64,000 bases of DNA, taken from NCBI GenBank assembly GCA_023213395.1, contig CM041465.1, positions 101,997,741 to 102,061,740 of the forward strand. Reading direction: 5' to 3'. The DNA comes from Cycas panzhihuaensis. Taxonomy: Eukaryota; Plantae; Cycadophyta. Of this stretch, positions 25,586 through 63,062 are shown in pieces; position 1 is the first letter of the stretch, and each line of letters begins with the position of its first letter. The notes under the pieces were generated by a model. That model made no database searches. It was not told the DNA's origin and worked only from the letters and a program-made list of their open reading frames with translations. The position numbers and the translations under genes were made by a program.

Positions 25586-25660
25586 GTAAGTCCAACTAAT
25601 CACTACTAAAAATCATTAGCAGATCTCATACAGAGTGAGCAATGAGGGGCACCTTTTCAC

Positions 25661-27967: not shown

Positions 27968-28050
<83 letters not shown>

Positions 28051-38500: not shown

Positions 38501-41500
38501 ACTCAAGAGACTCTTTAGAAGAGTTGGAGGATGACCTCTTATGATAGGTGATAAGAGGTTCCCCTATCTCATCACCTACGGAGGGTGGTGAAGTGGAAGA
38601 TGAGGTGATATGGCAGATTGCACGAGAGACATGAGCAATGACATACGAATTAGGAGGAGGGTTGGATTCCTCTATAGAAGAAGTTTCAGGCGAAGACTTG
38701 AAATGAGGGGAGTGCCCCCCTACTCATGTTTAGAAGGGATATGGGATGAGGAAGGTCCCCATCCTCACTGTTAAGCTCATTGTCACTAAGCATGGTGAGG
38801 TACCCATAACTCCCTACACTAATAAAGGTGAAACAAATAAGGTTCGAGGAAGAAGGGGAGGGGCCTTCTTCTAGGTAAGGCAAACTAGGAATGTCAATAG
38901 AACAAGTGGAGGCATGGGTAGAAGGGCCCTTATCATCCTTCGCCTGGTTGCGAACTTCTTGACAGAGTTGACGGGGTTGTTTGGTAGGAGGAGGCTCCCA
39001 AGGAATAACCCTTATTCATCCCTTATAGACGAATTTGAGTTGCACCTAATGGGATGAGCATGCAGCTCCCATTTGGTCGAGCCATGGGCATCTCAATAAG
39101 AGGTTGTAGCCTATGCCTACATTGAGGACTATAATATCAGTGAGGATAGTTTTGTCCTTGAGAGTAAGGGGAATAGATATCAATCCCAAAGGTGTCTTTT
39201 CATTACCATTATAGCCTTGACATTGCCATGGGACTAGTTCGAGGGCCAATATGCCAAGCTCTTGTATGATGCACAAGGGTATAGCATTGATGAAAGAATC
39301 ATTGTCTATAACAGTCCTTTGAAGGGTGCATTTGGGTTTGTCTATAGTTATGGTAAAGGGGTAGTGCCATTGACATTCCCTTTCACTAGATGGAGGGAGA
39401 TCTTTGGGATCAAATGAGATGATGGGCTCGCGACTTGGGGCAACATCGAAGGCATGAATAGATACATCAACTAAGCCTAAGGTTTCTAAAGGAAAAGCAC
39501 ATCGCTCAGGATAGCTTCTCAAGACGTCCATCATGGACATCCCCACAGCTATGGTGTGAAGCTCATCAACGAAGGAGAAGGGCTTCCCCTTCGTGATAGG
39601 TTGGGGAAACACCCTTCAGAAATCGTAATGACTAGGGCATATGGAAATAGTCTTGGGAAGCGTAAGAATTTCTAGAGGAGGGATTTCTAGAGGAGGATCA
39701 AGATGGGGAGTATAAGAAGAAGCACTTATTACTTCTTTGGCTACTTAGAACCAAGTTAAGGCATATAAAGGTGTGGTCTCAAGCACTTAGATGACTCTCT
39801 TTCCTTTGTTTTGAGATCAAGAGGGAGAAGGAGTTAGATGGTTGGGAGAGCCAGAAGAGGAGGAAAAGTTCCTAACCCCTTTCTTTTTAACTTGCATAGG
39901 GTGAGGGTTGGCAAACCTTCCTCTATTTCTGTTTGCCCTTTTGTTAGGTATTACGATCATGTTCCCCATGTTTGGAAAAAAGATCCTTGTAGATGGGTTA
40001 GTCTAGATTGGGTCTAAATGCCTGTTTAGGGGAAGAGTCACATTGTAGGGTGACTTTAGGGTGATGGTCTCTACATTGTAAGCCTTCATAAAAGCATTTC
40101 CCATGAATAGAACACCACTTCTTCTCTAAGGAAGAATCTATCTTCCTTGTTTGAGAAGGTTGGGTATTACCGCCCTTGGGAAATGTGGCTTGAGAGGCTT
40201 GATGGATAGGTTTGTGGAAAGTAGGCGATGAAGGGGCTTGGAGCTTCAACTCCTTCATTGTGCATTCGAAGGAACATATAGTAGAGGTTAAGGGGTCTAG
40301 GGTCTTCTCTGTCAGATGGGATAAAGACCTAGGAGGTTGTTGGACTTTAGTATCACGAGGTGGAGGAGGTGCCTCACATCGTTATGAGGACTTAAGAGGC
40401 TTCTTGAGACCCACTTGGATCTCAATAGCCTTAAGAGCCAAGCATTTGGCTATGGCAGAATCACATGTTGTCACCCACATTTTAAGGAATTCAACATGGA
40501 CTCCAAGGTGAAGGGCATTAACAAAGATATCTCTCTTTAATCCCTTAAGCAAATTTGCCTTTGTGGAGTGGAGAAGATCGTAGAAGCATCTCGTAAAGTC
40601 ATGATTCATCTCATCATGACCATTCTTGAGAGATAGGAAAGCCTTCATTCCGCTCTCGAAAGAATGAGTTATGTCAAAATAATTGACAAATTCATCAACG
40701 AGTTATTGGAATGAGTTGATAGAGTGCGCTGGAAGACGATAGAACCATTTAAGGACATCACCTTAGAGGGAGCGTAGAAAAAGTTTTATTAGGATATGGT
40801 TATACGCCCAATAATTGATGCATGCCATAGCAAAACTTCTAACCTGCTCCGTTGGGTTTTGTGAAGAGGTCCCATCGAATTTGGGCACCTTAAGAGAGTG
40901 AGGTAGTAAGTTAGTTCTATAATCCATAAAGGGGTGTTCCCTTGATTGGACCATAGGATCAACAAAAGATGGAAAAGGAGGTGGGCAAGGTTGCCTAAAT
41001 CCTCCTTGGGAGACTTGGTTTGGAAGGAGATACGTGCTTCCTCCCATTCGATGGGAGGGAATAAATCCCACATTCGAAGGGACTGGAAGAGGAGTAGGTG
41101 GGTATGAGGGATCCATCCCTCCTTAAGGATATGCTCCTTGATGAAAGGGTATATGAGAGGGGGCACCTTGGGAGGGGGCTTGCCCTCCTTGTAAAGGTGC
41201 CACATAAGAGGAAGAGTAAGACGATGGAATAGAAGGGTGCAGAATCAGATTTTGCCCATATGGGCCACCTATAGGTGGTGCGACGCCATATGTATACAAA
41301 GGATCCACTCCATAAATAGGAAGGGGATTTCCTTTACATTGCCCCCACAGTTGGGAAGTATATCCCAAGGGCACATAAAAGGAAGGATCCCTAAGTTGAG
41401 CTTGGGTATATGTGGGGATTGGCCCCACACAACTAGAGATAGGGGCATGCGTGGGTCCCCTAAATCTAATAGGAGGAGGATAAACTACTATCAGTTGGGG

Positions 41501-42142
41501 CATAGTTATTTGGATAGAGGGAGGCATACTCAACCTGAGTTAGGAAGAAGATATACCTTGGCTGGTCCCTAAGGAACATGGACCACAAGGAGAAGAAAAT
41601 GAAATGAGGGATGTCCTCGTTATAGGTAAGGGATTCGAATAAGATGGATGAGGTAGTGCAGATGTTGAAGGAAGCTCTATACTTTGTAAGATGTTATCCA
41701 ACCACTTAGGATGTGATTGGAGACTAGTGGCTTAGAAGCATTAGTTAAGGGCTTCCGCAACATCTGTGGGAGGGGTATCTGCCTGATCATATGAGGTGGA
41801 AGGGTCCTCATATGAAGAAGACTCCATAGGGTGATCCTCATTAGGATCACCACCAAGGTGATGATACTCCAAGGGAGATGATACCTCCACCTCATTACTT
41901 GAGAGGTGATGGACTTACGAGTGTTCTTGGTCACTCGGGTAAAAGACAGGGTCCTCACCCTCTTGGGTGGGCCCTTGGAAGGAAGTAGATGGTTGATGGG
42001 ACTTAGATACATAAGCATGATATGCCCAATCTGAAGGAAATCCTTCCATGGTCAATTTAGAATCTAATGATGGAAGAGGATAGTAAGGGAAGTCTTCCAA
42101 CGAAGGGGGAAGGCCTCGTAAACAATGAGAGAATCATCGCAT
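35530..42142 (-). pseudogene. gag-pol: gag-pol of element B (gag, CHHC knuckle, protease, RT, RNase H, integrase), with many stops and frameshifts
   Basis: PKFDGTSSQNP, WCSIHGKCFY, TVIDNDS, MPFRLKNVGATYQR, NYSTTEKECL, WPFSQWGLD, GPKWVGPF. Confidence 0.92.
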
Positions 42143-42302: not shown

Positions 42303-45300
42303 TGGAATCGCACCTCTTGGGGGAGGGGTCATTAAACTTGGATGAGATCGAGCCAAAATGGCTAACAGTTTTCATGGCTATGGACCTACGAGAACTAGTG
42401 AAAGAGATCACCCACAAAGGGCATTCGTGCATTAGAACACAGGTTCAAGGACCCACAAATGGCGCACAAACTCCTTTAGGGTAACTCCTCCTAGATTTGG
42501 AGTAACAGGTGGAAGAGGGATTTACTCGATTTCCTGAGTAACCTCAAAAGGGGGCCCTCCCATCTTGGATGGTTGAAGGAGGGAGGCAGGGAGTGAGAGA
42601 ATACCTCCTCATGTGAAGAGGTAACCGAGGAAATAAACCTTAGTAAGAAAGGAGAGAAACTCACATGTAAGCTTAAGGCAGCTTGTAACGTGAGTAGACA
42701 AGAGAGCGATTGGTTCCGCAAACTAAGCATTAACCAAAGGACGGAACCTAAGAGGTCTAACTTAGGGAAACAAAGGAAGAAGGAAAAAACAACCTTAAGA
42801 GGAGGTACTCTCAAGGCACTAGACCCAAGGAGGTTCTAGGTATAAAGGGTTAACAAAGGATGTTGTCCTATGTTTATCTTTCTTTTATTGTGTGATAGAG
42901 AGATATGAGGTGAGAATATCATGCTTGTGTATGCAAGAAATGATTTTAAAAGAAAATTAATGTATTCTTTCTCTCTCTCTCTCTAGATGTAACCTTGCTC
43001 TCTTTATTCTTTTATATGCAAGGAAAGAGAGCAAGTAAATTGCTAAGTAGGCAAAAAGCTGAAGCAAGAGATGCAAAGCTATTTTGTGATATGCAATAAG
43101 GGGACAAGAGTGTGTATAGATGAGTGCCTACCCACCTTACCTAAGCCTTGGTAAGGGTGAAGGCCCTTATAAAAGGAGTAAACAAGTGGGTGTGTGTGCG
43201 TCAAAAGAGAAGACAAGCACCTACCAGTGTGGGCTGACTAAATCCCCAACTATATGAATTTAAAGGGGCAAGCAAGAGATAACCAGTAAAGTGTAAAACA
43301 ATGTAATCCTTTCTTTTCCTTTTGTCTAGGGGTATATAACAAAAGGGGAGTAAAGGATAAGAGTAAGAAGACTAGGGAGAGAGACATACCCAGAAATACG
43401 ATGGTTAGGGTAGTGCTACCCTCACCACTCTCGCAATCCTTGGTCTTCTCGTTGTCACATGTGGTGCAACAGAAAGGATGCTCTTCTACTTTCCAGGAGG
43501 GGGCTTCCTTACCTTCCCCCAAAACTGGAACAAAAGGAAAATATGAAGAAAGAAAATGGAAACACTAAAATGACTTTACTTTACAATTTTTAAAGTGTTA
43601 GAAAAAGCAACTGCTAAGTGAAAGAGCAACATACCTGGGATGAAGATCCTTGCTTGCTCCAAATGCAAGGAAACTTGTACAAACTAAGCTCGTCATTTCC
43701 CAAGGGGCACCCAACATATGCGGGGACAAGTATGTGCAAGGAAATATGGCAAAATGTGTGTATCTCTTTTGAAAGAAAAAAAGCATTCAATGTTAATATT
43801 GCTTCTTATTATACATATATTGTTGAACATGTGATGTGAGAGAAGGGGGGTGAAAAGGAGAGAAATAGGTAGCCTCATAATGGCTAACCCTCCAAATCTA
43901 AAATGCTCCATGCTATCCCCAAGCACCAAGACAAAGGGTAAAGAGAGTGAACCAACCTGATAATAAGTGCAAACAGGTTTCTATGAAAGTAGACAAAAGC
44001 GGTAAAAGGGGTTACAAAAGTTGCAAATATTGCAAGAGTTACAAAGTGCAACTTTTGTAGATTTTTTATAAGAGTTAACCCAAAAAATGAAAGGGGTATG
44101 GAGTAGGGTTGAAACCTTAGCCATGTAGGATCTTTGATGGCTAGTTGCAAATGTAGCAATGGGCTACCTATGCTGCCACCAGTAGAGATCTTCTCCTCAA
44201 TGGCTCTCTACGAAATCAAGGGAGGTATGGAGAAGGAGAGAGGAGGAGAGAAGGGGGTTGCCCTTGAGGAGAAGGCATGTTGGGTGTAGGACCCCACCTA
44301 TAGCTCCTTTCCCACTTCATATAACCCTCTTCCCTGTTGCCTCCTTGAAGAACCCAAAGAGAACCAAGAAGGGGGAAGTGGATAGGCCAACAGGAGGGAG
44401 GGTTTACCTCCTGATACAATAGAGAAAAGAAGAAAGAAGCTCACTGCAAGGAGCACTAGTAGAAGAGTACCTATGTTATTCAAAAAGGAAATCAAAGGAT
44501 TGATCTAAGAGTACCTAGTAAAGGTAGATCTGAAGTAGATCTACCTAACAAACTAGGTGGAGAAGAGGGTGCTTTGGGATTTGTTGGAGGAAACCCTTGC
44601 AGTGTGGCGAATGGAGACCAAAACCTTGAGCAAAAGGAGACCTAAAGCTTGGTGAGCCGTTTAGAGCGTGATCTTTCTTCAGCCAACCTTGTTGCAGACC
44701 TGCGACCTATATTTCCTTAGCTGTAAGGGGCTAGTAGCTAGGTTTTCAGTTAGGTATAGTAGAGCTTAAGTATGTTATAGGGCATTTTTAGAGAAGAGAG
44801 TAGTGAAAATTGAATAAGAAGAAGTGGAAATGGGGTGGATTTTAGGTTTTTAAACCCAGCCCTAGTTTAACAAGCTATTAGGATTTGCTATGGGTGGGAT
44901 TTGAGTTACTACCATGTGGCAATTTCGTAATAAATATGAAATTAGCTACAAGTAGTTTAAAAAATAGTTATGAGCAGTCACCCCATAATTAACTTAGTAG
45001 TATCACGGAGTTTGTAGATCTACCATAAAGTTTACCACAGTGTAGGCAAAACCCAGATAAAAACAAGAGTGGGGGATCCTAGAAGCTCCCAAAAAGAGGG
45101 GATCCTAGACCCTAAGGTGCAAGCTAGAGTATCTAAGTAACAAGGAGGTTGCGAGACCTAATAGGACTACAACAAGTAGGAAAAGGATGGTCAACGACTC
45201 CTAAAAAGTGACAAAAGGTACACATGATGCGATGACTAGGCCTAGGCGAGGTGCTAGGGGCTATGTCATACTAATGAGTCATGCGGTATGGGTTGTAGAG

Positions 45301-45576
45301 GCCAAAAGGTACTTGGGGACATCATGGAGATGATGGCGGTGGGTTGTGGAGCACCATGGGATGTGTATCTCGAGATTGTCATAGGCTAAAAAGATGTTAG
45401 GATGCAAAATGGTCAAGCAACAAATGCATAGTGATTATGTAGTCAATCAATCAAAATACAATACAGGTAAAATGCTTCAATTCACCTTTTCTAAAACTGA
45501 CAAGGATGAGGGTAGAAGCATACCTAATCTTACCTGAGTTGGATTACTCGTGTCTATTCCTGGTAGCCAGGAAACA
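42303..45576 (-). repeat. Element B 5' LTR (~3274 bp)
   Basis: Colinear with 27310-30630. Confidence 0.9.
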
Positions 45577-46188
45577 ATCCCAAAGGTTAGGGCATGTACC
45601 ATGGGGCCACGTAAAGGGAAGAGTCCATTGGTTATGGATGAGGATGTATAGGGATGGGTCCCACGTGGCCTAAGGATTAGGGATGCGAGGGTTCCCTTGG
45701 TCATGTGAAAGGGGCATGGACCATGGTAGGTTGAGGCATACTTGCCTAGTTTGGAAGGGGCATGCTCAACCTAATTTGGGATATGGGTATATCCTAAGGA
45801 GCCCCTTGTACATGAGGGGCATGTTAAGAAGAGGAAACAATAGGAGCAAGTCCTATAATTTCCATGGACGGTGGTTGAGATGAAATAGAAGGACCTACAA
45901 TCATGTGTAAGTCATCTCTCTTCTAAGGGGTCTTCTTGATGCGAAATAAAAGGGGGTGACAAAGGTGTCCTTGAGTTGTCAAGTAGCCAGGGTAGGGCTC
46001 TCCTACCCTTAAGGTGAAAGAGGTTGAAGAAGATCTCCTTTTGAGGTGGAGACGAAAGGGTAAGGGTTCCTTATAAAAAAGAACCCTAGAGATAAAAATG
46101 AGGGGTAATGGTTGTTGATTTACTTAGCTTCTACTTATTCATTTATTTATTAGTTTAATGACAATAAGGAGTGAGCATAAGTAGGAGG
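45577..46188 (-). mobile_element. Right part of inverted family A copy D: gag 5' fragment, deletion, LTR 3' fragment
   Basis: Reverse complement of ~6190-6495, then of ~5100-5375. Confidence 0.8.
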
Positions 46189-49100
46189 TGGTATGTTCTT
46201 AGGAGGACCTAAACTAGATATCCCTCGATTTCTAAGGCATCATCTTTATCTCAATTAAAAGTAGGAGATATGGAGTTCAAGAAGTCTTAAGGAACCACCT
46301 TTGCCTAACTCCTGAGAAGGAGTCTTTACCTAATTATAAATGTAGAATGTGATGAAATACATAGATGTGAAAGGAAGGTAGTAGAATCCACTAGCCTACA
46401 AAACTAGGTAAAGGAGTTTAAGATTTAGAACTACACTAATAGTATTTTCAATATCCTTCCTAGGGACTCCTTTCATAAAATCTTTTCAACCTTTCAGGTT
46501 CTACTTAGATATAGGAAAGGGTAAGTAAATGGAAAATTCGTCCTTCTTATTTTACTCTTGTTTCATTTTCTTTTCCTCATTTGTGTTTGCTATGTTTGTT
46601 ATGCTCAACAAAGCAAAACAAAATGCATCAAAAGGCCTACTATACTTTCAATCAACAAATAAAGGAAAACTAAAACTAGATACATGCAAACTTTTTATGT
46701 CTTTTTCCTTTTTCTTTCAAAGATAAAAGATGCAAATGTAAATTTGAAATTATCCTTGTATATGCAATATATGCACCTTGTAAAGAATGGAAAGATACTT
46801 TTAAAGAGATATAATATACACAGTATGATTGTTTATGCAAGTTTTTCAAAGAGACCAATAACATGTAAAACTAGTTAATATACTTTGTGTTACACACATG
46901 GAACCATTTCTTTGAAAAAATGATGTATAATATAAAAATGAAAGAGATTTCGAAAAGATATTACTGCTATTTTTTAATGATTTTTTAGACCTATGGAATT
47001 ACATACAAATAATAAATCTAAACCATAACTCTCATACAAGGTACTAGTTTTGAAGGTTCTATCACATTTGGAGTAAGAGAGGCTCCAAGAGGATCATTAA
47101 ACCTTTAAAAAGCTAAAAAATTAGACATACATTTGCTATTCAACACTTTTAACTTTTCTTTTAAAGAAAGAAAAGGTAAACTTAAAAAGTGAAATCAAGT
47201 AAACCACAAAATTATGAGATTAAAACTTATTTCCTATTGCAAATAGATGTCTCTGAATGGCAATTTTTCTTTTAGTTGATCAATCTTTTCCAATGCTTTC
47301 CTTTAAAACAAATCAAGGAAGAGTACCAATAAATAAAAAAGGCTAAGCCACAGCCAAATAATACAAAAAAAGAGTGGCAAATTGCCTGAAATATAAATTG
47401 CTATTGAAGAATGGGAAGGGATAGCTAGATAAATAGTGGAGAGATGACCATGCTCCACCCTAGTCTAACCCTTATAAACCCCATAAAGGACTAGCCTCTC
47501 AATAAATATTTCAAAACCTAAAATAAATATAAGATTAATGCAATAATTAACCAAAGAAAAGAGTAAGTTTTGAGCAAAAACCACCTTCAAAATACTGTGA
47601 AATGAACTAAAAACTAAATAGGAAAGACCTTACCCATTTAGAAGAAGTTTGAAGCTTGAAACTTTAAGAAAAAATCTAAAGAATTGAAGCTTAGACGATC
47701 AACATTTGAATATCAGTAACACACGAAGTCACAACATAAAAAATCTTCCTTGATTCCATGCACAAGTATCTTCCAAATCTAAATTTTAATCACAACAATA
47801 AGAGTCTTTAAAATCTCTAAGAAAAACTCAAAACATCCACCACAAACTTGAACAAATCACATACTAATGCATCAACAACGAATCATAAAACCCTTGTAGT
47901 CATTCTTGGGCATCAAAGAGATAAGATTCTACTGAATTTAGGTGGTGGTATAAAAAATTTTGGCACACTAGCTGAGTTTTATATGCATGATAGTAAAAAA
48001 TGCAATCAGTTACAATTTTGGACCTATAAGAATGTGACTTTATTCTAAAAATGTGACAAATGTGGAGGTGAAAACTTACTTAAAAAAAGTCAAAATTTGA
48101 TATTAAAAATAAATTGAAGTATAAATGACTTGATAAATGAGTAAATAAACCCAAAATAAGGTGAAAATATTAAATACAAGCCCAAAAATAACAAAAATAA
48201 CAAAGTTGGATGAAATCAAGGATAAAACATAAAAATAACAAGTTTTAAAGGAGACATTAGGTTAAATTAATCATGAAGAAAAACATTTAGTTCTATAGTT
48301 TAAGTCATCAGTGGGTGATGATAAAAATATAGATCACATCATCGTTCATTATAAATCATCAAACAAGATTCTTACATTCCTTCATCAAAACATGGCCTAA
48401 TTCATGATCAAATAAGTCCATCATTTATTTTCTACGAAACCATATAATAAACATATCAAAACTTACAAATACCAACCAAATACAAATCAAAGGCCACATT
48501 TCGGTAAAACATTTTTCCCCTTGACACTTAAAGCTTCTATTCACAAAGAGAAATAAGATGGTAAGAGGTGGTAATAACAAAGTGATTGTTATTTTAGTTA
48601 AAGTAATGGGAATCAAATGAAATATATGAATGATGAGGTGACATATCTCTATGAACTAAACTAAAAAGAATTCCATAGAATAATAAAATATAAGAAAAAA
48701 CTCTCACTAGTAGGTCTACCCAAAAGGACTGGGTTTTTAATACCAAAAGGTCATTATTTACACCTTTTACTAAAAAAAGACTGGGCACTTAATGTCATCA
48801 AAAACCTGCCCAAAAGGACTAGGTATCTAATGTTAAAGAAAACTTATCTAGTGTCCACAAACTGGATGAAACTTCACTACCATATAACATGCTCATAAAC
48901 TAGATGGGACTTTACCATCAAATGATATGCCCATAAACTGGGTGGATCTTTACCATCAAATGCCCATAAACTAGATGGGACTCCACTATACAATTGGTCA
49001 TAATTTATCTCTCTTTAACCACGCATCAGAGGGAAGTCTTTTTGCCAAAGCAAAAATAATAGACGGTCATAGTTTACTGGCTCATTAATAGCTAAGTTTT

Positions 49101-49201
49101 TAGGGAAAACCATCATAGATTAACCTTATTAATGGGGTGAGGGCTTTTAGAGGTCAATTATTATAGTTTAACCTCATTAATAATCATATTCAAAGGGTTC
49201 C
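46189..49201 (-). mobile_element. Probable 3' end of an unrelated AT-rich LTR element (E): LTR ~46189-48511, PPT 48512-48525, 3' UTR with tandem repeats
   Basis: Family A homology stops abruptly at a TG (46189). CA at 48511 is followed by TTTTTCCCCTT (minus strand: AAGGGGAAAAA-TG). No second LTR is present in the window. Confidence 0.5.
48718..48995. repeat. Degenerate short tandem repeats (CCAAAAGGACTGGG-type x3; CATAAACTRGATGGGACTT-type x4, ~33-38 bp period)
   Basis: Directly visible. Confidence 0.75.
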
Positions 49202-50016
49202 TGAAACGCTCGCTACGGGGCGGTGATCCTATGTCTAGCAAAAGGATATAAGAGTACACTATGCTAACTAAGCTAGGCAATGAGGACCTCACCTCGCAGG
49301 GCATCCATGCGCCAGAGCGCGGATTCGGGACTGCAAGGTGCCTGGTTGCTTCCAGGTAGCCGTGCAAAACAAGGCCTTCCTACCCTTCGTATGGCCGGGA
49401 AGGAGAGAGAATGCCTTGCGCGTTGCATCTTCTCAAGGCAATGAGAAGGCAACGAATGGGAGGACAACTAACTAAGGTGTAGGTAAATGCAGGAAAAGGG
49501 ACGCAATGAGGGTAACTCGACTGCAACATGAGCGAACTATCTATGCTAAGCTATGCTAGATAAAATGAGAAACAATGTAAAAGATGAATACGCTTTCCCT
49601 TTTCCTTTATATTCCTTTACAATTTTCTAACTACTCAAGCAAATGCATGTAAGATAATAATGTAAAAGGGGATATACAGGAAGCGAGGGGAATACCTGGA
49701 TCCAGCTCCTAAATGGAGGTACGGCTCATCTCTCTAAGTCCTGATCCTTCCTTCTCTGTTCGTCGTGCATGCAATGCCGATCGGTGGTAATTACCGGAAG
49801 CGATGGACGAAGGGTCTACTTACCTCCCCTTAAGCATGCAAAATCAAATAAAGCAGAAAGAAACGAAAAAAGCTTGAAACTAAAGAAAGAAAGGCACTAC
49901 GTGGAACTAACCTGCAATGGGTTCGTCCCGTGTGTCGCTCCACCAATGCGTGATCCTGTAAACGGGTAAGAAGGACACCTTCCTCTCGAAAGAGAGGCCA
50001 CAACATATACCAAGAA

Positions 50017-50047
<31 letters not shown>

Positions 50048-51783
50048 AATCAAATGAAACTAAGATCTAAGCTAAGCATCGGAATATAACAAAATGAAAT
50101 AGCAACATATAAGAAATGCTCTCACCACCATGTACCACGAAAACACCTGAAAGGGAAAGGAGTATAGCCTCAGGATGGCTAACTCACCCACAGGAGACCT
50201 CCATGGAACTCGGGAAGGAAAACTAGTTGGCAATAAGGTAGTGAAGCAACAAATCTGTAACAAGGAAAAAAGAAGGACGCAACAAACTGGGGTTTACGTA
50301 GGGTCTAATACCAACAGGTGAGACTCCAATCAATGACGTAGTGACGAGCGCCTATGCTAATTGGAATACCCTAACTAAATCCCCTAAACTCCCTTAGCTC
50401 GTTCTCTAAGAAAGCGCAGATGGCAAAGGGAAAGAGGACAAGGGACGGGACCCTTAGGGAGAAGGACAGCAATAGGGGACGGAACCCTGCTTACCTCTCT
50501 CAAATCCTCGTATGTACTCCTTTACACTGGCTAACTAAGGAAAGAGTGAAAGGGATAGTTTAATGGAAAATGGAGGGGCTCCAAAGAAACAACGGGAAGA
50601 TACCCCTAATCTAGAGCAAGACCATGAGGAGAACTGTAGCTAACTAGGATCATATTCATTGAGAAATAAAAGAAATAGAAAAGAAAGTGATTGCAGGCAA
50701 AAAGCAAGAAGTACCTTGTATGGGGAAGATCAAGCATGCACTTTGCTACTGGGAACAGCAGTAATAAACAACATATAGGGACTGATCATAAGTGGTTCTT
50801 GCAAGAGTGTGGATGAAGAAAACTCCTTACAAGTTTGGAGCCTTGGAAGTTGGCTCTTGAAGCAGCTTTTGGGTGAAGAAGTCCCTTGAATCCTTGAGCA
50901 CCTGCAAAGAAGAATGGAGCTTGCTGTGGAGAGCTGTAGGGGACAGCAATGGCCCTGCAAGTCTAGCTGATGGTAGCCCACTTCACCCTTTGTCCAATTG
51001 CTATGTATGTGGTTTTTTTTTTTCTGTGTCTTTTTTTGTGTGAAAGCTAGAAGTTCTCCTTAGAAGTTTAAAAATTGGCAAAAAGATCTAAAAAATGGGG
51101 AGTAAAATCCCCTTTATCCCCCCTGTTCATGGCAGGTGAACGTTGGGGATGTCAGGGCGACTCGAATCAATCAATGCCACGTGGCAGTTTCGCGGAAAAA
51201 CGGAAACTGTCACATGGTTCTCTTTTTTATTAAATTTCAAACAGTCGTACCGCGGCAAACTCTGCGGTACCGCTAAGTTTATAGCGGTATCAGGTTGGAA
51301 ACAAAAAAAGAGAAAAATGAGCAGAAATATCAGGTTTTGGAGCAAAAATCAAGGCTAAACATAAGTTAGAGCGGTGAGGAATGCCTGTGCAATGGGCAAG
51401 TACCCAAAATAATGCAAAGAGTCCTAACTAAGGATTAAATCAGGCTTAAGAAGGACTACAACATAAGCAACACGTTGTAACGAGAGCAAATAGGACTGAC
51501 GAAAACATCCCGAGAGACCGTGGAGACAATGTGGGTGGCTGTGCGCCATACGGGGTGTAGCATTCGCTACGGAATGCCCCTGCTGTGAGTCGTCATAGGC
51601 TGATGGTGTGCCGTAAGCACATGCATTATGAGCAAGTAGAAAAGTAATGCGTGCAAGCAGCCATATGTCAAGCATCCTACTCTAAATAACCTCAATCAAG
51701 CATGGGCAAGAAAAGTTAAGAAAGTATACCTGAACAAACCTACATCGATGCGTCTCGAGTCCATTCCCAGTAGCTGGGAAACA
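49202..51783 (-). repeat. Element C 3' LTR (~2582 bp); PPT at 51784-51795
   Basis: Plus strand TGAAACGCTCG...GGGAAACA, followed by CTACCCCCTTGG. Confidence 0.88.
51175..51186. promoter_or_regulatory. Palindromic G-box TGCCACGTGGCA in LTR U3
   Basis: Perfect 12-bp palindrome; deaminated TGCCATGTGGCA at the equivalent place in the B LTR (29966-29977). Confidence 0.55.
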
Positions 51784-51865
51784 CTACCCCCTTGGCAGTA
51801 GAGCCTCACTGCTCGGAAGCGTAACGTGATGGCGAATACTGATAATCAAAGATATGAGTAGTACA

Positions 51866-51868
<3 letters not shown>

Positions 51869-51938
<70 letters not shown>
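51869..51938. repeat. (TA)n microsatellite
   Basis: Directly visible. Confidence 0.95.
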
Positions 51939-51941
<3 letters not shown>

Positions 51942-52199
51942 CAATAAAGAGTAGCACGTGGACCAAGGGCGTAGGCGAGTGTCGTGGCAGAACGCATGGA
52001 CAAGGGAGATGGAGACAAGGACAATGTAGGGGCTGCCTACGCGTCGTCTAACATCGACCTATAACTGAAATAAGCAAGTAAAAGGGGATGCCCCCGTTGC
52101 CGAAGTATAACACGAAGTAGGAGGGCATCTAGCAAATAGAGCAAGCAATCTAAGTAATAGCAACCAGAGACTTGGGCACGGGCTAGCCAGGTAAGCCTC

Positions 52200-52616
52200 A
52201 GGGGCGATTGTCAAGAAGAGGGAGGCGATGCTCAAGGATGAGGCGGACGAGGTCACACCGGCATTGAGGTGCCTAGGGATATGCTGAATATCCACTGACG
52301 AGAAACAAGCTAGAAGAGACCTGGTAACAGACGCGAGGGTTCTCAGGTGAGGGCATCGCACCTGGTAGACCTAGGTGAGATGGGACACCACAACCTGAGA
52401 ATAGCAAAACAACACGATAGACCCGCGATGGAAATGAAGACCATCAGTAAGGGCTTCAATAACGGCCGTGTACTTGGCTTCGTTATTGGTAGCCTCAGGA
52501 AGAAAGACTCTGGAATACAAGAAATCGTGTCCGGAGGGGCTGCGAAGAATCCACACAGCGGTGAAAGGTCGAGGGTTGCCGCGACTTCCACCATTGGTAA
52601 AAATGAGAAGGGACAT
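52200..52616 (-). pseudogene. Stand-alone aRH ORF of element C; 3' end approximate
   Basis: MSLLIFTNGGSRGNP...EATNNEAKYTAVIEAL...CYSQVVV..*VYQVRCPHL...VDIQHIPRHLNA (ORFs 52371-52616 and 52059-52361). Confidence 0.88.
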
Positions 52617-53139
52617 GTCTGAATACTAAGCTCTGGTAAACAAATAACGGTGAAAGTAAAAGAAAGATTCAAATGGCAAGCAAAAAGGTGGCCAAGAAGG
52701 GTAGGAGGACCTAGTAATAAGGTTACCCGAGAACGAAAGCAAGCAGTCTGGCCACTGGCTGAGAGTGGGCGGAGAAAAGATGCCCTAGAGTGCCAAAGGT
52801 TACTTTGCGAAGCAAAGCATGCTCCCGGACAGGAGAGCATTCCCTTTGGAGACCCCAGGAGCGAGAAAGGACTGCGGAAACGAGTCCAGGGCAGCGAAAT
52901 GAGCCAAATGAGTATAAACTCGGGCATGCACGGGAGTAGCGCACAAAGCGATGCAGAAGGGCCCTGGCAAAAGTGCAATAATGAGGCGCCATAAATGCCC
53001 TTGCAAGAGAAGGCAAAAAGGACGTCCATGGAGCACAATGGGTGAAAGGGCTAGAAGGGAAAGGCTATCAGGGGAATGAGATGGTCCCAACGACTGTCAC
53101 GGAGCCAAAAACAGAAGAAGTGCCCGTCGGGGCCCCCAG

Positions 53140-53149
53140 TTATATAAGG
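53140..53149 (+). promoter_or_regulatory. TATA box of the antisense PMD gene
   Basis: TATATAAGG ~165 nt upstream of the exon 1 ATG. B has TATAAAGG at the same spacing; A has AATAAAAGG on the minus strand at ~875-883. Confidence 0.55.
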
Positions 53150-53307
53150 AAAACAAATGAAAATCAGATTCATTTTCACCGACTCTCGTGCGAAACTAGA
53201 GCCTTTTCCTTACGATGCGGAGCACTACCCAACTTTGGAGGCATGTAGGAGACAATCCGACCGTTGGATCCGAGCATAGAGACAATCGTTATGATCACAG
53301 AGACGAG

Positions 53308-55730
53308 ATGCCGATGGTCAGGCCAGATCCGGTGAGTGGATCTCACGAAACCCTTGCCATTTCGAAGTTCAAAATTTACTACTTTTTAGTTAATTTTATG
53401 TATTTTTTATGCCCCTTATGGGCAATTAGATGCCTCTCAGAGTCTGAATCGGACCCGGAAAGAGGCGGACACAGGCATTAGGGAGCCTAGTCCTGGGTTC
53501 TACCTGGGTCCACCACAAAATTTTTAGATTTTCTAGGTCAAACCCCCTTTGGGGTTGCCATTCTGCATCAAGCCCAAGATCGCGCAGACCGTGATCTTGG
53601 CCGCGGGATCGCTACAGGAGAGTGATCGCCATAGGACCCACTCCAATTTAGCTGCACCGCCAAATTTGGAGCCAGACGAGGCGTAAAACCGTAAAAACCG
53701 TAAAAGGGCCAAACAAATTTCAAAATCAAAAAGGAAAATCAGACAGATACCACGCATTTACGATCGCTAGAGGTCGAATTTTAATCGTGATGATCAGAGG
53801 CGCTATCGCCGGATAACCGCGAAAACGTCGGTATGCCGATGCTGAGCTACTTAGAGATGGTGTCCCAAGAGGACAAGGCGACTCTAAAGAGGTGTGGCCT
53901 ATACAAGGCCCTCAAGACCCCCCAGTTCACGTTAGACTAGAGGCTTCCGGTTGACATCGTGTCACACTGGGACATGAGGAGGCATGTATTTCACTTGCCT
54001 CCGATAGGCGATATCACAATCACCCCAGGAGATATCAGTGCATCCCGGGGTACCAAATGATGTGGGAGACCAGTGAGGCTGGGAGCGCTACCTAGCACCA
54101 AGGCAAGACATGTGGAGGTAGCCTGGGCCTCACTGTGGATCGACAGTGGGAGCGAGGGAGCTCTCTGCATCGTACTCATGTCCAGGATTCCTCGGGCAAG
54201 GAATTTGATACTATTATGCATTCTGTTCCAGATTTCCCAGAAACAGAACTACAGGGAGATCCCCAGAGGATGGGTGGACGCAGCGCGTTGGTGTGAGGCT
54301 GGCGAGAGGATGGACTGGGCCACTCTAGTTGCGGTGAACCTCGTCGCCCAGCTAGATACCATTCAGAGATCTAGCAGAGGAGGGTTTTCTTACAGCATGC
54401 TATTACAGTGCTGGTTTTTTTATCACTTTGCGGCAGTGGCACCGGCAAGGGGGCCATTCCCCATAGCAGGGTGGGCCCCGATGGTCCACAGGTGGCAGAC
54501 GAGGCTCCGGGGGATAGAGGACCAGGCTCATGTTCATCGGTTGGTCGATGCGACATCACTCGACCTCCTCACTCTGACAGACTATATCGCAGAGCCCTAC
54601 AAAGCAGTGAGGTGGGAGAGTGACAATGGAGCGGGTGGAGCAGGAGTGCCCATCAACGACGATGACGATGACAACAGTGATGACGATGGGGGCAACGACG
54701 GTGATGATGGGGGAGATGGGGTTGTCCCATCATGACTTGCAGGGGAGGCAGGTCCATCACAGTCGACAGAGGGAGTAGCAGGACCATTTGGGACTGCCGA
54801 AGAAGGGGCAGGCCCATAAGGAGCTACCGAGGCGAGTAGGGTGCCCGAGACCAGGGGTCGCAGACTATAGATCGTGAGGAGATCCGGAGATATGAGGGTC
54901 GATCCAGTCCCTACTAGAAACGAGGTTGAGGCAAAGGACGTACCTGAGGATGAGGTACCTGCAGCTGGTGGAGGGCCAGGAGATGAGGATGTTGCCCGAG
55001 CAGAGGAGCCGGCGGCCACGGCAGGTAAGACCTAACCGTTTCCTTAGTCGTTTGACATCTAGATAGACACTTGATTTCATTTTATTATGGTATGCAGTAA
55101 GGATATACACTAACACATGGCATGTTGCATTGACAGGAGTAGCAGAGGTCTGGAGACTAGTGGAGGCCATGGTGAGGGAGATGATCCCTCAGGTCTACGT
55201 AGAGGGACAACCGCCCATCTAGGCAGAGGATGCACCCAGATCAGCAGGATCCCACATGCAGGCATTCGTCCCACTAGTGAGGGTGAGAGACATCTGGGCT
55301 GCAGAGACCCAGGAGCACATGGCATTCTAGGGACAGCTGCAGCGAGAGGTCGACACGGCCAGGGGCAAGCAGGATGAGCTGCGCAGACGAGTCCAGGCCT
55401 TAGAGGCTCAGAGCAGACTAGGAGGAGATGCAGGGAGCAGCATCTGCCTAGCAGTCCTAGAGGAGCACCTTAAGGTGACAGAGGAGAAGTTTAGGGCTAT
55501 GGAGGAGGGACTCCGAGGCAAGTGGGATCGCATCCAGATCTGATATGACCAGCTAGTAGCGCAGATGGTCTCGAGGTCAGGCAGGAGTCGGACCCATACA
55601 CATACAGCGACTACTACCCCGAGACGGCCTCAGGACGAGGGGAGCAAGGCGGGCAGAGGCCTGTGAGGAGCCTCGGAGGGATGTGGTCCCAGAGAGGGAT
55701 CACACGCACGGGATGGTACCCGTGATCGTG
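53308..55730 (+). pseudogene. Antisense spliced PMD (MAIN/MAIL-like) gene of element C: exon 1 53308-53331, intron 1 53332-~53797, exon 2 ~53798-55024, intron 2 55025-55136, exon 3 from 55137 (predicted coiled coil); 3' end approximate
   Basis: SHWDMRRHVFHLPPIGDITITPGDI, MDWATLVAVNLVAQL, GGFSYSMLLQCWFFYHF. CAG|GTAAGA...CACTAAC...TGACAG|G preserves frame into QLQREVDTARGKQDELRRRVQALEAQ. Confidence 0.88.

Positions 55731-55868: not shown

Positions 55869-55931
<63 letters not shown>
55869..55931. repeat. (TA)n microsatellite between the convergent pol and PMD 3' ends
   Basis: Directly visible. Confidence 0.95.
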
Positions 55932-55932
<1 letters not shown>

Positions 55933-56476: not shown

Positions 56477-59400
56477 TCACGCGTAAAACTTCTTAAGGAA
56501 TTTTCCGTTGACTGCTTTCTCAAATTCCAAGCCATCCAAGGTGGTGATCCTGTATGCGCCGTTATCGAGCCTTTCAAGAATGATGAAGGGGCCTACCCAT
56601 TTGGGCCCGAATTTGGTCAAGCGATCGTAGAGGTACTCCAATTTGAGGACGTGGTCCCCGGGGCACAAAGGACGAGCACGAAGACATTTGTCATGTGTCC
56701 TTTGTAAGCGGGCTTTCGAAGCGAGGTTCACTTGATAAGCCGTTAAGCGCCTCTCATCCAGGGCTTCGAGGTCTAGGAGGCGAGCCTAGCGAATAGACTC
56801 CTCATCAATGAGGCCTCGAAGGGAAACTCGAAGAGAGGTCATTCTGGTAGCCATGCGGATGGAAGTGCAATAAGCCCATAGGGCGAAAGGGAGTTGGATG
56901 TGCCAGTCTCTTTGAGACTGGGCAATGGTTTTCTTCAAAATGCTGACGAGCGTTTTGTTGAAAGATTCAACTTGCCCATTTGCTTGGGGGTAATAAGGGG
57001 ATGACGTCTTATGCGAGATCTTGAATTTCTCGCACAATTTATCCATTTCCTTATTACAGAAGGGAGTTCCATTATCCGTAATTAGGACATCCGAACTCAA
57101 ACGATGATAATATCTTTGGTAGACGAAGGTGGCTATCATCTTGCCAGGGGTAGTGGACAGGGGGATTGCCTCTGCCCATTTAGTAAAGTATTTGGTAGCG
57201 GTTAAGATATATTTATGTTGTGCAGAAGATGGCGATGATATAGCCCCAATGAGGTCTAAACCCCATTGAGAAAAGGGCCACGGAGACATGATAGGGTGCA
57301 ATGCCTCGGAAGGTATGTGAGAGACATTGGTGTACTCCTGACATCGCCAACATCTAAGGGCACAAGCATGGGCATCCTTGAACAAGGACGGCCAGTAATA
57401 ACCCATGCGGAGGATCCTTTGGGCCATGGATTGGCCCCAGTGGCTCCCCACAAATGCCATGGTGGCATTCGCGAGTATTTAGTCCGCTTCGCCGAGCGAC
57501 GAGCGGGCAGGATCCCATCGAAAGATCTCTTGTACAACACTTCACCCACGAGGAAGTGTTGCCTAGCAGTGGCGCGGATACGCAACCTAACCTTGTTACT
57601 GGCTTCAAGGTGATATTCTCACGAGTCGATATCGCACAAACACCATACCACTACCCGCCGAGTGGATGAGGAGAAGCGTCTTGGATGGTTATAATAGACT
57701 CATCCGAGAAAGAGTCGTCAACAGGAACGCCACTCGCGTTGGGAATAGCAGCATCGGCTAATTGCTTGGCTACTATCATTCCCTTCTTCAACTTCCTGTT
57801 AATGACTTGCAAGTCGAACTCTTGAAGCAGGACAGCCCAACGACCCACCCTACCTGTCAAATCTAAACGAGTAAGTAAGTAACGTAAGGGATCAGATTAA
57901 ACGACCACCTTAGTTGTATTGCCGAGCAAGTAATGCCTAAACTTCTTGGTCGCATGGACCAAGGAGAGGCATTCCTTTTCGGCGGGGGGATAGTTTAATT
58001 CAGCAGCAATGAGAGTGTAGCTGATGAAATAAATAGCCCTCTCAGTTCCCGAATCGTCCTCCTGTACGAGCATTGTGCCTGTGGATTCGCTTGCCACGAG
58101 GTGTATAGGATGAAGGGCTTATCAAAGCGAGGAGGCGCCAATGTAGGGGTGGAAACGAGAGCTTCCTTGAGCCCTACAAAGGCCTTTTGGGTCTTGTTTG
58201 ACCAAACAAAAGGGGCTCCCTTCTTTAATAGGTTCGTAAGAGGCTTGGCATTTACGGCGAAGTCTACCAAAAAATGCCTCAGGAAACCAAGCCTGCCTAG
58301 AAACGACTTAATTTGTCGTTGGGTCCTAGGCGGCAGCATGTCAATGATTGCCTTGACTTTTTCTAGATCGATTTGTATTCCTTGCTGGGACACGAGGAAA
58401 CCTAAGAGTTTGCCTAAAGTGACGACAAACACGCATTTCAGTGGGTTTAGACTAACATGATACTTGCGGCATCTTGTGAAGATGGCGCGCAAGTCGGAGG
58501 GATGATGGGCCCTAGCACAAGAAAGGCCCATCATATCATCCATGAAGACCTCCAACGTATTGTTAATGAGGTCGTGAAAGATAAAATGCATGGCTCTCTA
58601 ATATGTAGCCCCTGTATTCTTAAGACCAAAGGGCATTGCCTTGTAGGCAAAGGTACCCCATGGCGTACTGAAGGCCGTCTTATGGTGGTCTTCAGGAGAA
58701 ATCTGAATCTGGTTATAATGGAGAAGTCAGTCCATCGAGGACATAACTTCAATCCAAATTGCATTTACTGATTATTTGATCGATGAAGGGAAGAGGAAAG
58801 TTGTCCTTAGGACAAGCGTTGTTTATATCGCAAAAATCGACACAAATACGAATGGTCCTGTTCTTCTTAGCAACGGGAATGATATTCGATACCCACTTAG
58901 GGTAATCGATGGAAGAAATGAGTCTCGCATCTAGAAGCTTCTCAACTTCTATCTTAACGGCAGCTGAAAGCTTCGGGTGAAGGGGACGCTACTTCTGACG
59001 CACCAGGCGAGCGTCAGGAAAACTCGTAAGGTTATGGGTGACGATGGAGGGGTCAATGCCCTTCATATCCGAGTAGTCCCATGCAAATACATCGCGGAAT
59101 TCCCGGAACAGGAGGGAGTATTCCCTCACTTTGTCAGGAGTACATTCTGCTCCTACCTTGATGACCTTATCCAGGGCAAGGACTATGTCCTGAGTTGCCC
59201 CCATGCACATGGCATTCCCCTCCTCGAAATGGAGGGGGGCAAGATCAACTGGAAGGGAGGAAACGGAAGAAGGGATTAGGTTGGCTAATGTGGACCCAAT
59301 CGCTAAGACCTTCTGGTGGCCAAGCTTGTGGTGACCAGGAGGCAAACTGGGCATGGAACCTGCTAAGTGCTCCAGTAATACCTCATCGTCTTCGAAGTAG

Positions 59401-62400
59401 TCCACCCCATGGATGACCTGACTTCGAATGGACGAGGCGCGGGATAGCGTGGGAGCGATAGGACCGGTATGGCTTGAAAGCTGCCCATCATCCCTAAGAG
59501 ACTCTGAAGGAGAGTCCAGAAGAGGTCCCTCATAAAAAGCAAGAGGGAAACTCTCAACATCATTACCTACGGGAGGTGATGGGACGGAAGAGCCAGGAAC
59601 GTAATGATCGACATGCGTAATGTCATGTGACATGTGAAAATGACCAAGCTCTACAACAAAAGGGGTCATAGGAGGAAACCTAAGACTAGGAGGATGCCCC
59701 CCACTAGTGCAGAGGAACGAAACTGGGTGAGGACGATCCTCATCCTCGCTATGGGACTCGTCATCGTCAAACATGGTGAGGTACCCATAGCTCCTAACAC
59801 CAATGGTGGCGAAACGCGTCAAACCTGGAGAAGAAGATATGGGATCTTCTTCGCGGTAAGAGGAATCGGGGATTCCAATGGAGCAAGCCGAGACATGGTC
59901 AGAAGGGCGTTTGTTTCCCTTCGTATGGCCATGGCTTGCCTGGGTGGAAGGCCTAGCTTGTTTGGCAAGTGATCGCTCGCGGGAGACAACTTTCATTTGC
60001 CCGTTATGGACAAATTTAAGTTGCCCCCAACGGGTGGAACATACGGCTCCCATTTGGTCAAGCCATGGTCGACCCAGAAGCAAGTTGTAATCAACGTCAA
60101 CATCAAGAACGACGATGTTAGTAATGACATTCTTATCCTCGAGGGTAAGGGGTATCGAGACAGATCCTAAAGGAGTCTTCTTGCTACCGTCATAACCTTG
60201 ACAATGCCATGGAACAGGTTCCAAGGCGGAAATGCCAAGCTCTTACATAACACGCAAGGGCATGGCATTGACGGAAGAACCGTTGTCCACGACAGTTCTT
60301 CGCAACGTGCAATCAGGAGTATCTATGGTAATGGTGAAAGGGAAGTTCCATTGGCGTTCCCTTCCACTAGATGCAGGAAGATCTCTGGGATCGAAGGAGA
60401 TAACGGGTTCGTAGCTTTGGGTTGTACCCAAGGCATGAACGGACGCGTCATTCGATCCTAGAGCTTCTAAGAGGAGCGTTCGCTGCTCGGGGCAACTTCT
60501 CAAGACGTCCATGATAGACATCCCGGCAGCCACAGTGAGAAGCTCTTCGACTATAGAGAAGGGCTTACCCCCCCCCCTGTGGGTTGGATAAGGGCTCTCC
60601 TAAAGTTGAATCTACCGGGGTGGACGAGAATGCTCTTAGGAAGTGCGGGAATCTCCGGAGGAACGGATTCCAGAGGGGGATCGAGTTGCGAGGTGGACGC
60701 GAAGGTGCCTGTTGCCTCTTTTGTGACTTGAGACTGGGTCAACGCGTAAAGGGGAGTGGTCTCAAGCATTTGGATCACCTTCTTTCCCTTGTTACGGGAC
60801 CGCGAAGGTGATGGAGCATGGTGATCAGGGGAGCGCGAAAGGGAAGATGGCCTTCGCACACCCTTCCCTCTGCCATGCGAAGGGCGAGAATTGGGGGATC
60901 TATCCCGATTCTGATTGTTCCTTTGCTGAACATCACGACCACGTTCCTCATGTTTGTGGAACGGGTCTCTATGAACGGGTTGATTGAGGTTAGGCCTCAA
61001 TGCCCGCCTAGGGGATGAATCGCGTGGCGGGGCGTCGCGTGGGTGCTGTGCCCGGCAACGTGAATCGTCATGGAAACACTCCCCATGGATGGAACACCAC
61101 CTCTTCTCAAGGGGAGGATCAATCCTCCTTGCTTGAGAAGGCTGGGTGTTACTCCCTTTGGGGGGCATCGCACGAGAAGCTTGCTGAACTAGTTTATGGG
61201 AGGTCAACGATGAAGGAGGTTGGAGTTTAAGCTCCTTCATCGTGTGCTCGAATGAGCGAATAGCGGAGATAAGAGGATCTAGGGTCCTCTCAGTCGGATG
61301 AGAGGTGGGCCTAGCGGGCTGCGAAGGTTTGGTTTCCTTCACTGAGGGAGGCGCCTCATGACGTTGTGAGGGCTTAGGAGGTTTCTTGAGTCCAGCTTGG
61401 ATCTCAATGGCCTCCAATGCCAAGCACCTCATGATCGCGGAGTCACATGTAGTTGCCCCCATCTTAAGGACTTCCACATGCACTTCAGGGCAAAGTGCGT
61501 TGACCAAGAGATCTCGCTTCAACTCTTCAGGCAACGTGGCCTTGGTAGAGTGAAGGAGATCATGAAAACGTCGCACAAAGTCACAATTCATCTCGTCGTG
61601 ACCTTGTTTAAGTGACAGAAGCGCTTTCATTCCGCTTTTGAATGGACAGGCCACGTCAAAATAGTTGACAAACTCATCCACCAATTGCTGGAACGAAGAA
61701 ATCGAATGAGCAAGAAGACGGTAAAACCACTTGAGGGCGTCGCCCTGCAAGGATCGCGGAAATAGCTTCATCAGAATATGGTCATAAGCCCAATAATCGA
61801 TGCACACCATAGCGAAACTACGTACATACTCGGTAGGGTCTTGCGACGAAGTTCCGTCGAATTTGGGAACTTCAGGAGGATGAGGCGGCAGGTTAGTCCT
61901 TAGTGCCTCAACAGACAATGGCGTCAACCTATAGTCCATGAAAGGACGTGTCCTCACTTGGGCTAATGGATTGATGACCGGTAAAGGAATGGATGGGGGT
62001 GGTAAACCCATCCCTCCTTGGGGAAACGCCCCTTGTTGGAAAGGGGTCATGTAAACGCCCGAAGGGAGATATGTTCCCTTGCGAAGACGCGACAACAGGA
62101 GTCGCACTAGATGGCGAAAACGAAGGATGAGGGACCAGGTTTTGCCTATATGGGCCACCCGTAGGTGGCGCAACCCCATATGGGTGCAACGGGTCCACCC
62201 CATAAGCAGGAAGATGGTTTCCCCTACCTTGCCCCCAAGGTTGAGATGTGTAACCTGGGGGCACGTAAAGGGAAGGACCACCAGCAGAGTTTTGAACGTA
62301 CATAGGAGTGGGTCCTACATAGTTGACGGCAGCAGCACTAGTAGGGCCTCGAGGCCTACTAGGGAACACATGTGCCACGTTCGAAGGCGGCGCATGCGTT

Positions 62401-63062
62401 TGACTTGGAAACGGCATGCTAAACCCAAGTTGGGAAAAGGACATGCCACGAACGGGTCCAGAAGAAGTAGGACCATGGCTAGAAGTAGGCAGCACAATGC
62501 TTGCCCTGGGAGTCAAGGTAGACATGGCATGGGATGAGTGTGCATGGGCAGAAACATCATTCGTTGTATGATGCGCAGGCATGGATGAGGAAGATGCTAC
62601 ATTACGCAATACTTCTTCAAACCATCTAGGGTACGGTTGGCGACGAGTTGTTCGGAAGTACTTGCTAAGCGCTTCGACTACGTCGGCAGGAGGGGTATCC
62701 TCATAGCCATACGAAGTCGATGGGATCTCGAAAGTAGGGGATCCCTCAGGACGCTCCTCGTAAGGCTCACCAGTGGGGTGGTCAGTCTCGTGAGGGGCCG
62801 AATCTTCCACTGTATGAGCGGAAGGATGAAAGTCATCAGGGTGAAATTGGTCATCTAGATAGTAGATGGAATCATCACCCCTAGGAGCAGATTCTGGAAT
62901 AGATGCAGGGAACTCTTGAGTTCCCAAAGTCATGGTATGGTAGGCCCAATCAGACGGGTAACCTTCCATTATCGAATCGGGGTTCGACGACGGAAGGGAA
63001 CGAGGCAATTGGTCTTCTAACAATGGCGGCAGACCTCGCAAGTGACGCGAGAAACGTCGCAT
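56477..63062 (-). pseudogene. gag-pol: gag-pol of element C: gag ~60551-63062, protease ~60050-60533, RT ~58100-59100, RNase H ~57700-58100, integrase 56477-57600; several frameshifts
   Basis: EVPKFDGT..LFPRSLQGDALKWF, CSIHGECFHDDSRC, VVDNGSSVN, LLLGRPWL, VFMDD, NYPPAEKECL, WGLD..TDNG..NGQVESFNK, GPKWVGPF. Confidence 0.95.

Follow-up and report, generated by a model that had tools for sequence, protein, structure and literature searches.

An antisense PMD gene and a free-standing archaeal-type RNase H gene between pol and the polypurine tract of probable Tat retrotransposons in Cycas panzhihuaensis

A 64,000-nt stretch of the Cycas panzhihuaensis genome (GenBank assembly GCA_023213395.1, contig CM041465.1, positions 101,997,741–102,061,740; hereafter the window) was found to carry three diverged families, A, B and C, of Ty3/gypsy long terminal repeat (LTR) retrotransposons with a common pair of accessory genes. 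In all three, the interval from the pol stop codon to the polypurine tract (PPT) holds, in sense orientation, an open reading frame (ORF) for an archaeal-type RNase H (aRH) and, antisense to pol, a PMD gene. The gene order is pol, antisense PMD, aRH, PPT. An earlier interpretation made from the DNA letters alone (the sequence-only reading) had proposed that families with different LTRs share this module. This was borne out, as blastn gave no match between LTR bodies of different families and only the PPT and the LTR terminus AAGGGGGnAnTGTTTCC were shared, while the module was present in each family. We regard the elements as probably of TatIII type (Tat lineage III / Tat H, "structure #3"), carrying the two accessory genes of that clade. 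Judged by its signals, the retrotransposon PMD "eORF" (extra ORF) is a spliced gene with promoter signals, and substitution patterns indicate that both genes were under past purifying selection in active lineages. The copies in the window are dead relics that decayed neutrally after insertion.

A two-gene cassette downstream of pol

The aRH gene was located in five copies. Those of family A lie on the plus strand at 1409–1828, 12529–12948 (one in-frame stop) and 23957–24423 (frameshifted), and those of elements B and C on the minus strand at 31128–31547 (two in-frame stops) and 52197–52616. The last comprises 140 aligned codons from the conserved ATG, with an in-frame stop at 52371–52373. The first two A copies, B and C aligned without gaps over 140 codons, and the frameshifted third A copy aligned as two pieces. 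The ATG occupied the same position in all five copies, in agreement with the sequence-only reading of an ORF of about 140 codons with a start of its own. Protein conservation between families began exactly at this ATG; the DNA upstream was rich in indels, and no protein-level conservation between families was found upstream of the ATG.

Pfam searches matched a piece of the second A copy to RVT_3 (29.5 bits, cut-off 21.6) and a piece of the C copy to RNase_H (E=4e-4). The closest solved structures were the 140-residue stand-alone prokaryotic RNases HI 3u3g and 4h8k (E=8.5e-8), aligned from residue 3–4; Halobacterium RNase HI (4e19) was a further solved relative. Since these best relatives are free-standing proteins of 140 residues, the aRH ORF matches an autonomous enzyme of archaeal type in size and shape. 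Nothing was returned when the aRH piece was used to search a word index for homologues in the 52–166 residue range, nor when metagenomes were scanned with PMD and, separately, with aRH. Between one and five in-frame stops were counted per copy, and one copy was frameshifted. The catalytic DEDD tetrad was complete in none of the five copies, each of its positions being retained in at least two, and three of the four positions were substituted in element C. This loss of catalytic residues is consistent with decay after insertion.

The PMD assignment was made on exons and pieces searched one by one, never joined into one product. A stop-free piece of 224 residues from element C (54061–54732) matched PF10536 at E=3.5e-7 over profile positions 121–247. 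Its score of 30.2 bits is lower than the cut-off of 34.9 set for whole proteins, since no more than a piece was available for scoring. A piece of B and the relative P0002 widened profile coverage to positions 34–247. A phmmer search of a library of 1.8 billion proteins matched the PMD piece to P0008 and P0009, both of which pass the PMD threshold themselves, and all 30 of its 30 protein-atlas neighbors were PMD proteins. Together with the RVT_3 match of aRH, these results uphold the ORF identities, PMD and type-1 RNase H, given in the sequence-only reading. Homologue searches with PMD otherwise returned only short fragments (closest P0001–P0004) and distant PMD proteins. The sole named relative in the analysis was a Ginkgo biloba protein with 42% identity.

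Comparison of A, B and C yielded a three-exon model for the PMD gene, with coordinates set on element C (53308–55666, plus strand, antisense to the element) and a predicted product of ~590 residues. Exon 1 (53308–53331) consists of an ATG and seven further codons followed by GT, and has the same length in B (32305) and in A (11905 and 23258, minus strand). Intron 1 (53332–53799) runs from GTGAGT to CAGAG, directly before a GCG codon. Its donor is conserved in A, B and C, and in B and C the acceptor with the following GCG codon takes up matching alignment positions, in phase 0 on both sides. Exon 2 (53800–55024) encodes the PMD domain and an acidic/Gly-rich linker, and carries stops at 53938, 54058, 54733, 54817 and 54868. 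Intron 2 (55025–55136) has a GTAAGA donor, a CTAAC branch site near 55108 and an ACAG acceptor; branch site and acceptor are kept in B, where the donor dinucleotide is altered. Exon 3 (55137–55666; stops at 55220, 55328 and 55541, terminal TGA at 55664) encodes a coiled-coil-like helical C-terminus and showed protein-level conservation with B and A. Its Pfam matches were weak and confined to coiled-coil families, and the fold predicted for its 70-residue core was two long helices (pLDDT 86). Altogether the C copy carries eight in-frame stops and no frameshift. The PMD gene of B extends from 32305 to about 34650 on the plus strand, with exon 1 at 32305, exon 2 from 32813 and exon 3 at about 34140–34650, and is heavily decayed. 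In family A it lies on the minus strand at 9747–11905 (exon 1 at 11905–11882), with a second copy at 20816–23258 and a cut copy at 63–296.

Upstream of the PMD ATG of element C, by ~130 nt, stand a TATA box (TATATAAGG, 53142–53150) and, 25–30 nt downstream of it, an initiator-like TTCATTTTCA (the pair spanning 53142–53178, plus strand). Both are kept in B (CATATAAAGG, and TTCATTTTCA at 32166) and are weaker in A. From these signals the PMD gene looks autonomous, and the antisense three-exon gene is probably transcribed from its own internal TATA promoter. Its introns could persist through retrotransposition because the RNA that is copied would be that of the other strand.

We infer the biochemical roles of the two products as follows. 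The PMD product would most likely be a nuclear DNA- or chromatin-binding regulator, by analogy with the PMD-C proteins and VANC, and possibly an anti-silencing factor for the element. An element-encoded regulator or anti-silencing factor is the best guess because the PMD-C proteins MAIN, MAIL1 and MAIL2 offer the nearest functional data. The aRH product would be a free-standing archaeal-type RNase HI of 140 codons, translated from its own conserved ATG and probably supplying RNase H in trans for reverse transcription.

The sequence-only reading had suggested dN/dS below 1 as a check on both ORFs, and comparison between the families in the window gave this result. Coding-frame values were 0.09–0.23 for aRH, 0.16–0.21 for the PMD domain (exon 2 vs B) and about 0.3 for PMD exon 3; with dS saturated between families, these are imprecise, upper-bound estimates. 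Read in the two remaining sense frames, these alignments gave 0.65–1.5. Because of the saturation, differences were also counted by codon position, with no substitution model. Third positions were in excess between families (p=2e-3 to 9e-5), with counts of 42/32/71 for aRH of B against the first A copy (p=2e-4) and 56/51/97 for PMD block 2 (p=9e-5). Within family A the counts were flat (29/23/26, p=0.7). The excess between families and its absence within A indicate that both genes were constrained while the families diverged and decayed neutrally later. In the spacer that separates the two genes, and in the region upstream of aRH, differences were spread evenly over codon positions, which argues that the spacer is non-coding. 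The segment 53148–53363 was considered as coding for its low pseudo-dN/dS in one frame, but its codon-position differences were uniform and it was set aside as non-coding.

The saturation of dS counts against reading the cassette as two genes kept by selection in TatIII-type elements, and so do several other points. As regards present-day activity, every copy in the window is broken and none is intact. The PMD model is least certain in 54733–55024, where conservation with B is weak and three stops (54733–54870) are read through. Alignment of the spacers of A, B and C revealed no conserved promoter element oriented toward aRH. The TatIII assignment itself is drawn from domain order, the post-integrase aRH and the antisense PMD.

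The spacer and the expression of aRH

The two genes point apart, with 692 (C), 758 (B), and 624 and 699 bp (A) between the aRH and PMD start codons, matching the divergent layout at about 700 bp that had been noticed earlier. In each of the three families, 3.68–4.06 kb separate the pol stop from the aRH ATG downstream. In element C the spacer (52617–53307, 691 bp) contains an invariant GAGTATAAAC (52910–52919) and a conserved CATAAATG (52990–52997), both in PMD orientation. The 10-mer GAGTATAAAC recurs at the homologous spacer site of all five cassettes (52910–52919, 31892–31901, 12218–12227, 1097–1106 and 23645–23654), exact except for one mismatch in one copy. It reads toward PMD at ~300 bp from every aRH ATG, and its role could be that of a second promoter or of a cis element. 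The three TATA-like motifs conserved in the spacer all point toward PMD. A conserved TATA box on the aRH side was considered and rejected, as the candidate TATATAAG, ~100 nt upstream of the ATG, occurs in family A only.

As aRH lies on the sense strand, any LTR-driven RNA already includes it. A subgenomic or spliced RNA is, judging from the layout, at least as likely a source of aRH as an internal promoter. For the aRH mRNA, we lean toward a spliced or subgenomic LTR-driven RNA, at somewhat less than even chances; an internal promoter in the spacer seems possible but rather doubtful, and some other origin equally so.

The sequence-only reading had joined the two genes into a divergently transcribed unit independent of the LTR. 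The PMD side of this claim found support in promoter-like signals, a TATA box and initiator-like motif in B and C and exon 1 followed by GT in all families. The aRH side found none, as the spacer showed no conserved promoter element facing that gene. In its strict form, the spacer (620–760 bp) would be a single bidirectional promoter serving PMD and aRH as an LTR-independent two-gene unit, which we consider unlikely though well within consideration. Its appeal lies in the head-to-head layout, whose spacing varies little among the five cassettes, and in the spacer being one of only two 3' stretches outside aRH that can still be aligned as DNA between B and C. The 10-mer at a constant distance from the aRH ATG fits as well, and in maize the Tat element Grande has an antisense accessory gene driven by a promoter of its own (cited in PMC11963269). 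These points are met by the uniform PMD-ward orientation of the TATA-like motifs, by the A, B, C alignment, in which the 300 bp upstream of the aRH ATG hold no conserved promoter-like feature, and by the presence of aRH within LTR-driven genomic or subgenomic RNA. Less likely again is a fuller version in which the spacer is truly bidirectional and the unit would make both a PMD/coiled-coil protein, binding the element's own LTR or intron motifs and countering silencing, and a trans-acting RNase H. If this fuller version held, it would explain how aRH works from outside pol, as was asked in 2023, and the host PMD silencing factors would originate in a retrotransposon counter-defence gene.

A contiguous Pol C-terminus is ruled out for aRH by the order pol, antisense PMD, aRH. 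The two could still be joined if a sense intron of ~3.9 kb, holding the antisense PMD gene, were spliced out to link integrase to aRH. Sense RNA is spliced in Ogre, a Tat relative, and the stretch that precedes the aRH ATG is pyrimidine-rich and in C contains CAG sites. Ustyantsev et al. 2015 place aRNH at the extreme C-terminal end of the putative Pol (PMC4408406). We nevertheless find this fusion improbable. The pol stop follows directly on the canonical integrase C-terminal motif in 4/4 copies, the aRH ATG is kept in 5/5 copies, and protein conservation sets in exactly there. Candidate acceptors do not align between families and differ in phase, and in C an in-frame stop stands four codons upstream of the ATG. 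Pyrimidine-richness extends over the whole sense strand, so the upstream tract is not special. The 2023 re-analysis also treats aRH as a separate ORF (PMC10508981).

Another reading takes the ORFs for passengers without function, either a fragment of a transduced host gene or ORFs arisen by chance that hitch-hiked in a few copies. It would suit the stops and substituted catalytic residues of every copy in the window, but is highly improbable given that the module keeps its order in three families with LTRs too diverged to align, and given third-position excess and low dN/dS in coding frames only, an aRH free of gaps over 140 codons amid indel-rich flanks, and the report of the same domain pair for the whole gymnosperm lineage (PMC4408406).

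Elements carrying the cassette

Self-comparison and motif searches showed family A to be a tandem array of LTR-internal-LTR-internal-LTR structure on the plus strand (window 1–25900), with LTRs starting at 2254, 13374 and 24801. The array has a period of ~11.1 kb, its repeats are ~80% identical, and neighbors share LTRs; the third LTR (24801–25854) bears an internal deletion. In family A (6891–8434 and 17549–19584) the integrase core follows directly after gag. Since protease, reverse transcriptase, RNase H (RH) and the integrase N-terminus are absent, family A is taken as a non-autonomous derivative. It is ~3.7 kb shorter than B and C and retains the 5' ORF, gag, the PMD gene and aRH.

Elements B and C lie on the minus strand, measure ~16.6–18.3 kb (C and B) and have long LTRs. 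The LTRs of B (27310–30630 and 42303–45576) are 85% identical. Those of C (3' LTR 49202–51784; 5' LTR from 63243, leaving the window) are 91.5% identical. The PPT of C with the first 3' LTR bases (51777–51793, minus strand) reads AAGGGGGTAG followed by TGTTTCC, and the same motif is found in A and B. A primer-binding site (PBS)-like TGGCGACCAT lies 1 nt past the 5' LTR of B, with decayed forms in A and C. Along the minus strand of C, Pfam matches follow the Ty3/gypsy order of gag, RVT_1, RT_RNaseH_2, Integrase_H2C2 and rve, and B is collinear with C. In both elements the native RH region is broken across several frames. The pol (integrase) stop of C (56477–56479, minus strand) follows ...NGKFLKKFYA, with integrase Pfam matches at 56786–57460. 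The C-terminus KFLKKFY[VAM], closed by the stop, was found in 4/4 readable copies (8848 and 19894 in A, 35530 in B, 56477 in C).

Element B sits nested in an inverted A-like fragment (flanks 25900–27309 and 45577–46188). Mapped onto intact A, both flanks fall on one set of five positions (~6503–6507), and the two flanking pentamers now differ at three sites, all transitions. A 5' ORF of ~330–380 codons was seen between PBS and gag at 61929–63062 (minus), 41174–42142 (minus), 5702–6674 (plus) and 16795–17700 (plus). Its protein identity across A, B and C is 31–44%, and a Pfam search with the ORF from this interval of the three families gave no match; it could extend gag at the N-terminus or be an extra ORF at the 5' end. 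Element C has long (TA)n microsatellites in the aRH–PPT interval (51865–51945) and between the PMD 3' end and the pol stop (55870–55932). The interval between B and C (46200–49200) is low in GC (31–37%).

The sense strand is pyrimidine-rich in all three families, with a GC skew of about -0.1 to -0.3 on the gag-pol coding strand (26000–64000 vs 1–26000), and this accounts for long spurious stop-free ORFs on that strand. Two such sense-strand ORFs over the cassette (52343–53038 and 54597–55019) were weighed as genes; they had no Pfam match and were taken as artefacts of the stop-poor, pyrimidine-rich strand. Pfam searches with 53042–53481 and 55117–55377 also gave no match.

Relation to known elements

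The combined layout was put forward in the sequence-only reading as possibly new. This has to be given up: it is of a known kind, since lineage III/TatIII and a separate aRH have been described in gymnosperms. Ustyantsev et al. 2015 define a gymnosperm Tat lineage III in which aRNH follows integrase and the 3' end carries an eORF for PMD in antisense orientation (PMC4408406). For TatIII, Neumann et al. 2019 give gymnosperm hosts, aRH after integrase, lengths of 12.7–17.3 kb, a 5-bp target-site duplication and reverse eORFs at the 3' end, with a PBS for tRNA-Arg in 64%, or for tRNA-His (PMC6317226). Biryukov and Ustyantsev 2023 describe aRH as a separate ORF ("structure #3") in Pinaceae, Cycas and Ginkgo, and ask how it can act from outside pol (PMC10508981). 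Prokopeva et al. 2026 point to "controversial reports" over whether the post-integrase aRH belongs to pol or is a separate ORF in the 3' untranslated region (PMC13468544).

Read as TatIII-type retrotransposons, the window elements share with TatIII and Tat H/I "structure #3" an aRH downstream of integrase, outside pol and as a separate ORF, an antisense PMD ORF in the 3' region, large size and long LTRs. Differences concern finer structure. The accessible text of the TatIII papers gives neither the order pol, antisense PMD, aRH nor the head-to-head layout, which their figures may show. In the 2015 paper aRNH is at the Pol C-terminus, whereas it stands apart in the window. The lineage III eORF is given in the published texts as PMD only, to which the window copies add a helical C-terminal exon, and the PMD gene has two introns in the window that the published text, in the portions available, leaves unmentioned. 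The window adds the explicit order pol, antisense PMD, aRH, PPT, some of which may already be in published figures, and the intron-bearing structure and helical tail of the PMD gene. It also adds a conserved aRH ATG and selection on the free-standing ORF, which bear on the dispute over aRH as part of pol or as a separate ORF.

Similarity extends to the antisense accessory genes of the angiosperm Tat elements Grande, RIRE2 and Retand (TRP28 ORFs in Retand), which are conserved within their lineages, lie in the interval from pol to the 3' LTR and have a predicted DNA-binding or nuclear product (PMC11963269). The Grande antisense gene has its own promoter, as the signals suggest for the window PMD gene (PMC11963269). 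The domain of the angiosperm Tat antisense genes is Transposase_28, in contrast to PMD in the window elements (PMC11963269). Angiosperm Tat elements also hold aRH within pol, between RH and integrase, and have no partner aRH gene, whereas the window aRH is separate. For aRH, LC11-RNase H1 (3u3g/4h8k) and Halobacterium RNase HI (4e19), with 140 residues and the same start, show that the domain can be an autonomous enzyme. These proteins are cellular or metagenomic, whereas the window copies have lost catalytic residues and carry stops.

HTLV-1 HBZ offers a parallel for an antisense, separately promoted and spliced regulatory gene in a retroelement (PMC11963269). The two genes have no homology, and the predicted promoter of the window PMD gene is internal whereas that of HBZ lies in the 3' LTR. 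PF10536 is shared with Gypsy-encoded PMD-A and with MAIN, MAIL1 and MAIL2 of PMD-C (PMC5418596; bioRxiv 10.1101/2024.09.27.615353). The published PMD-A clades were defined in angiosperms, and the window PMD was compared at the level of the domain. PMD-A is the sister group of host PMD-C (PMC5418596), and the retrotransposon PMD is a candidate anti-silencing factor and a candidate ancestor of the MAIN/MAIL-type host genes.

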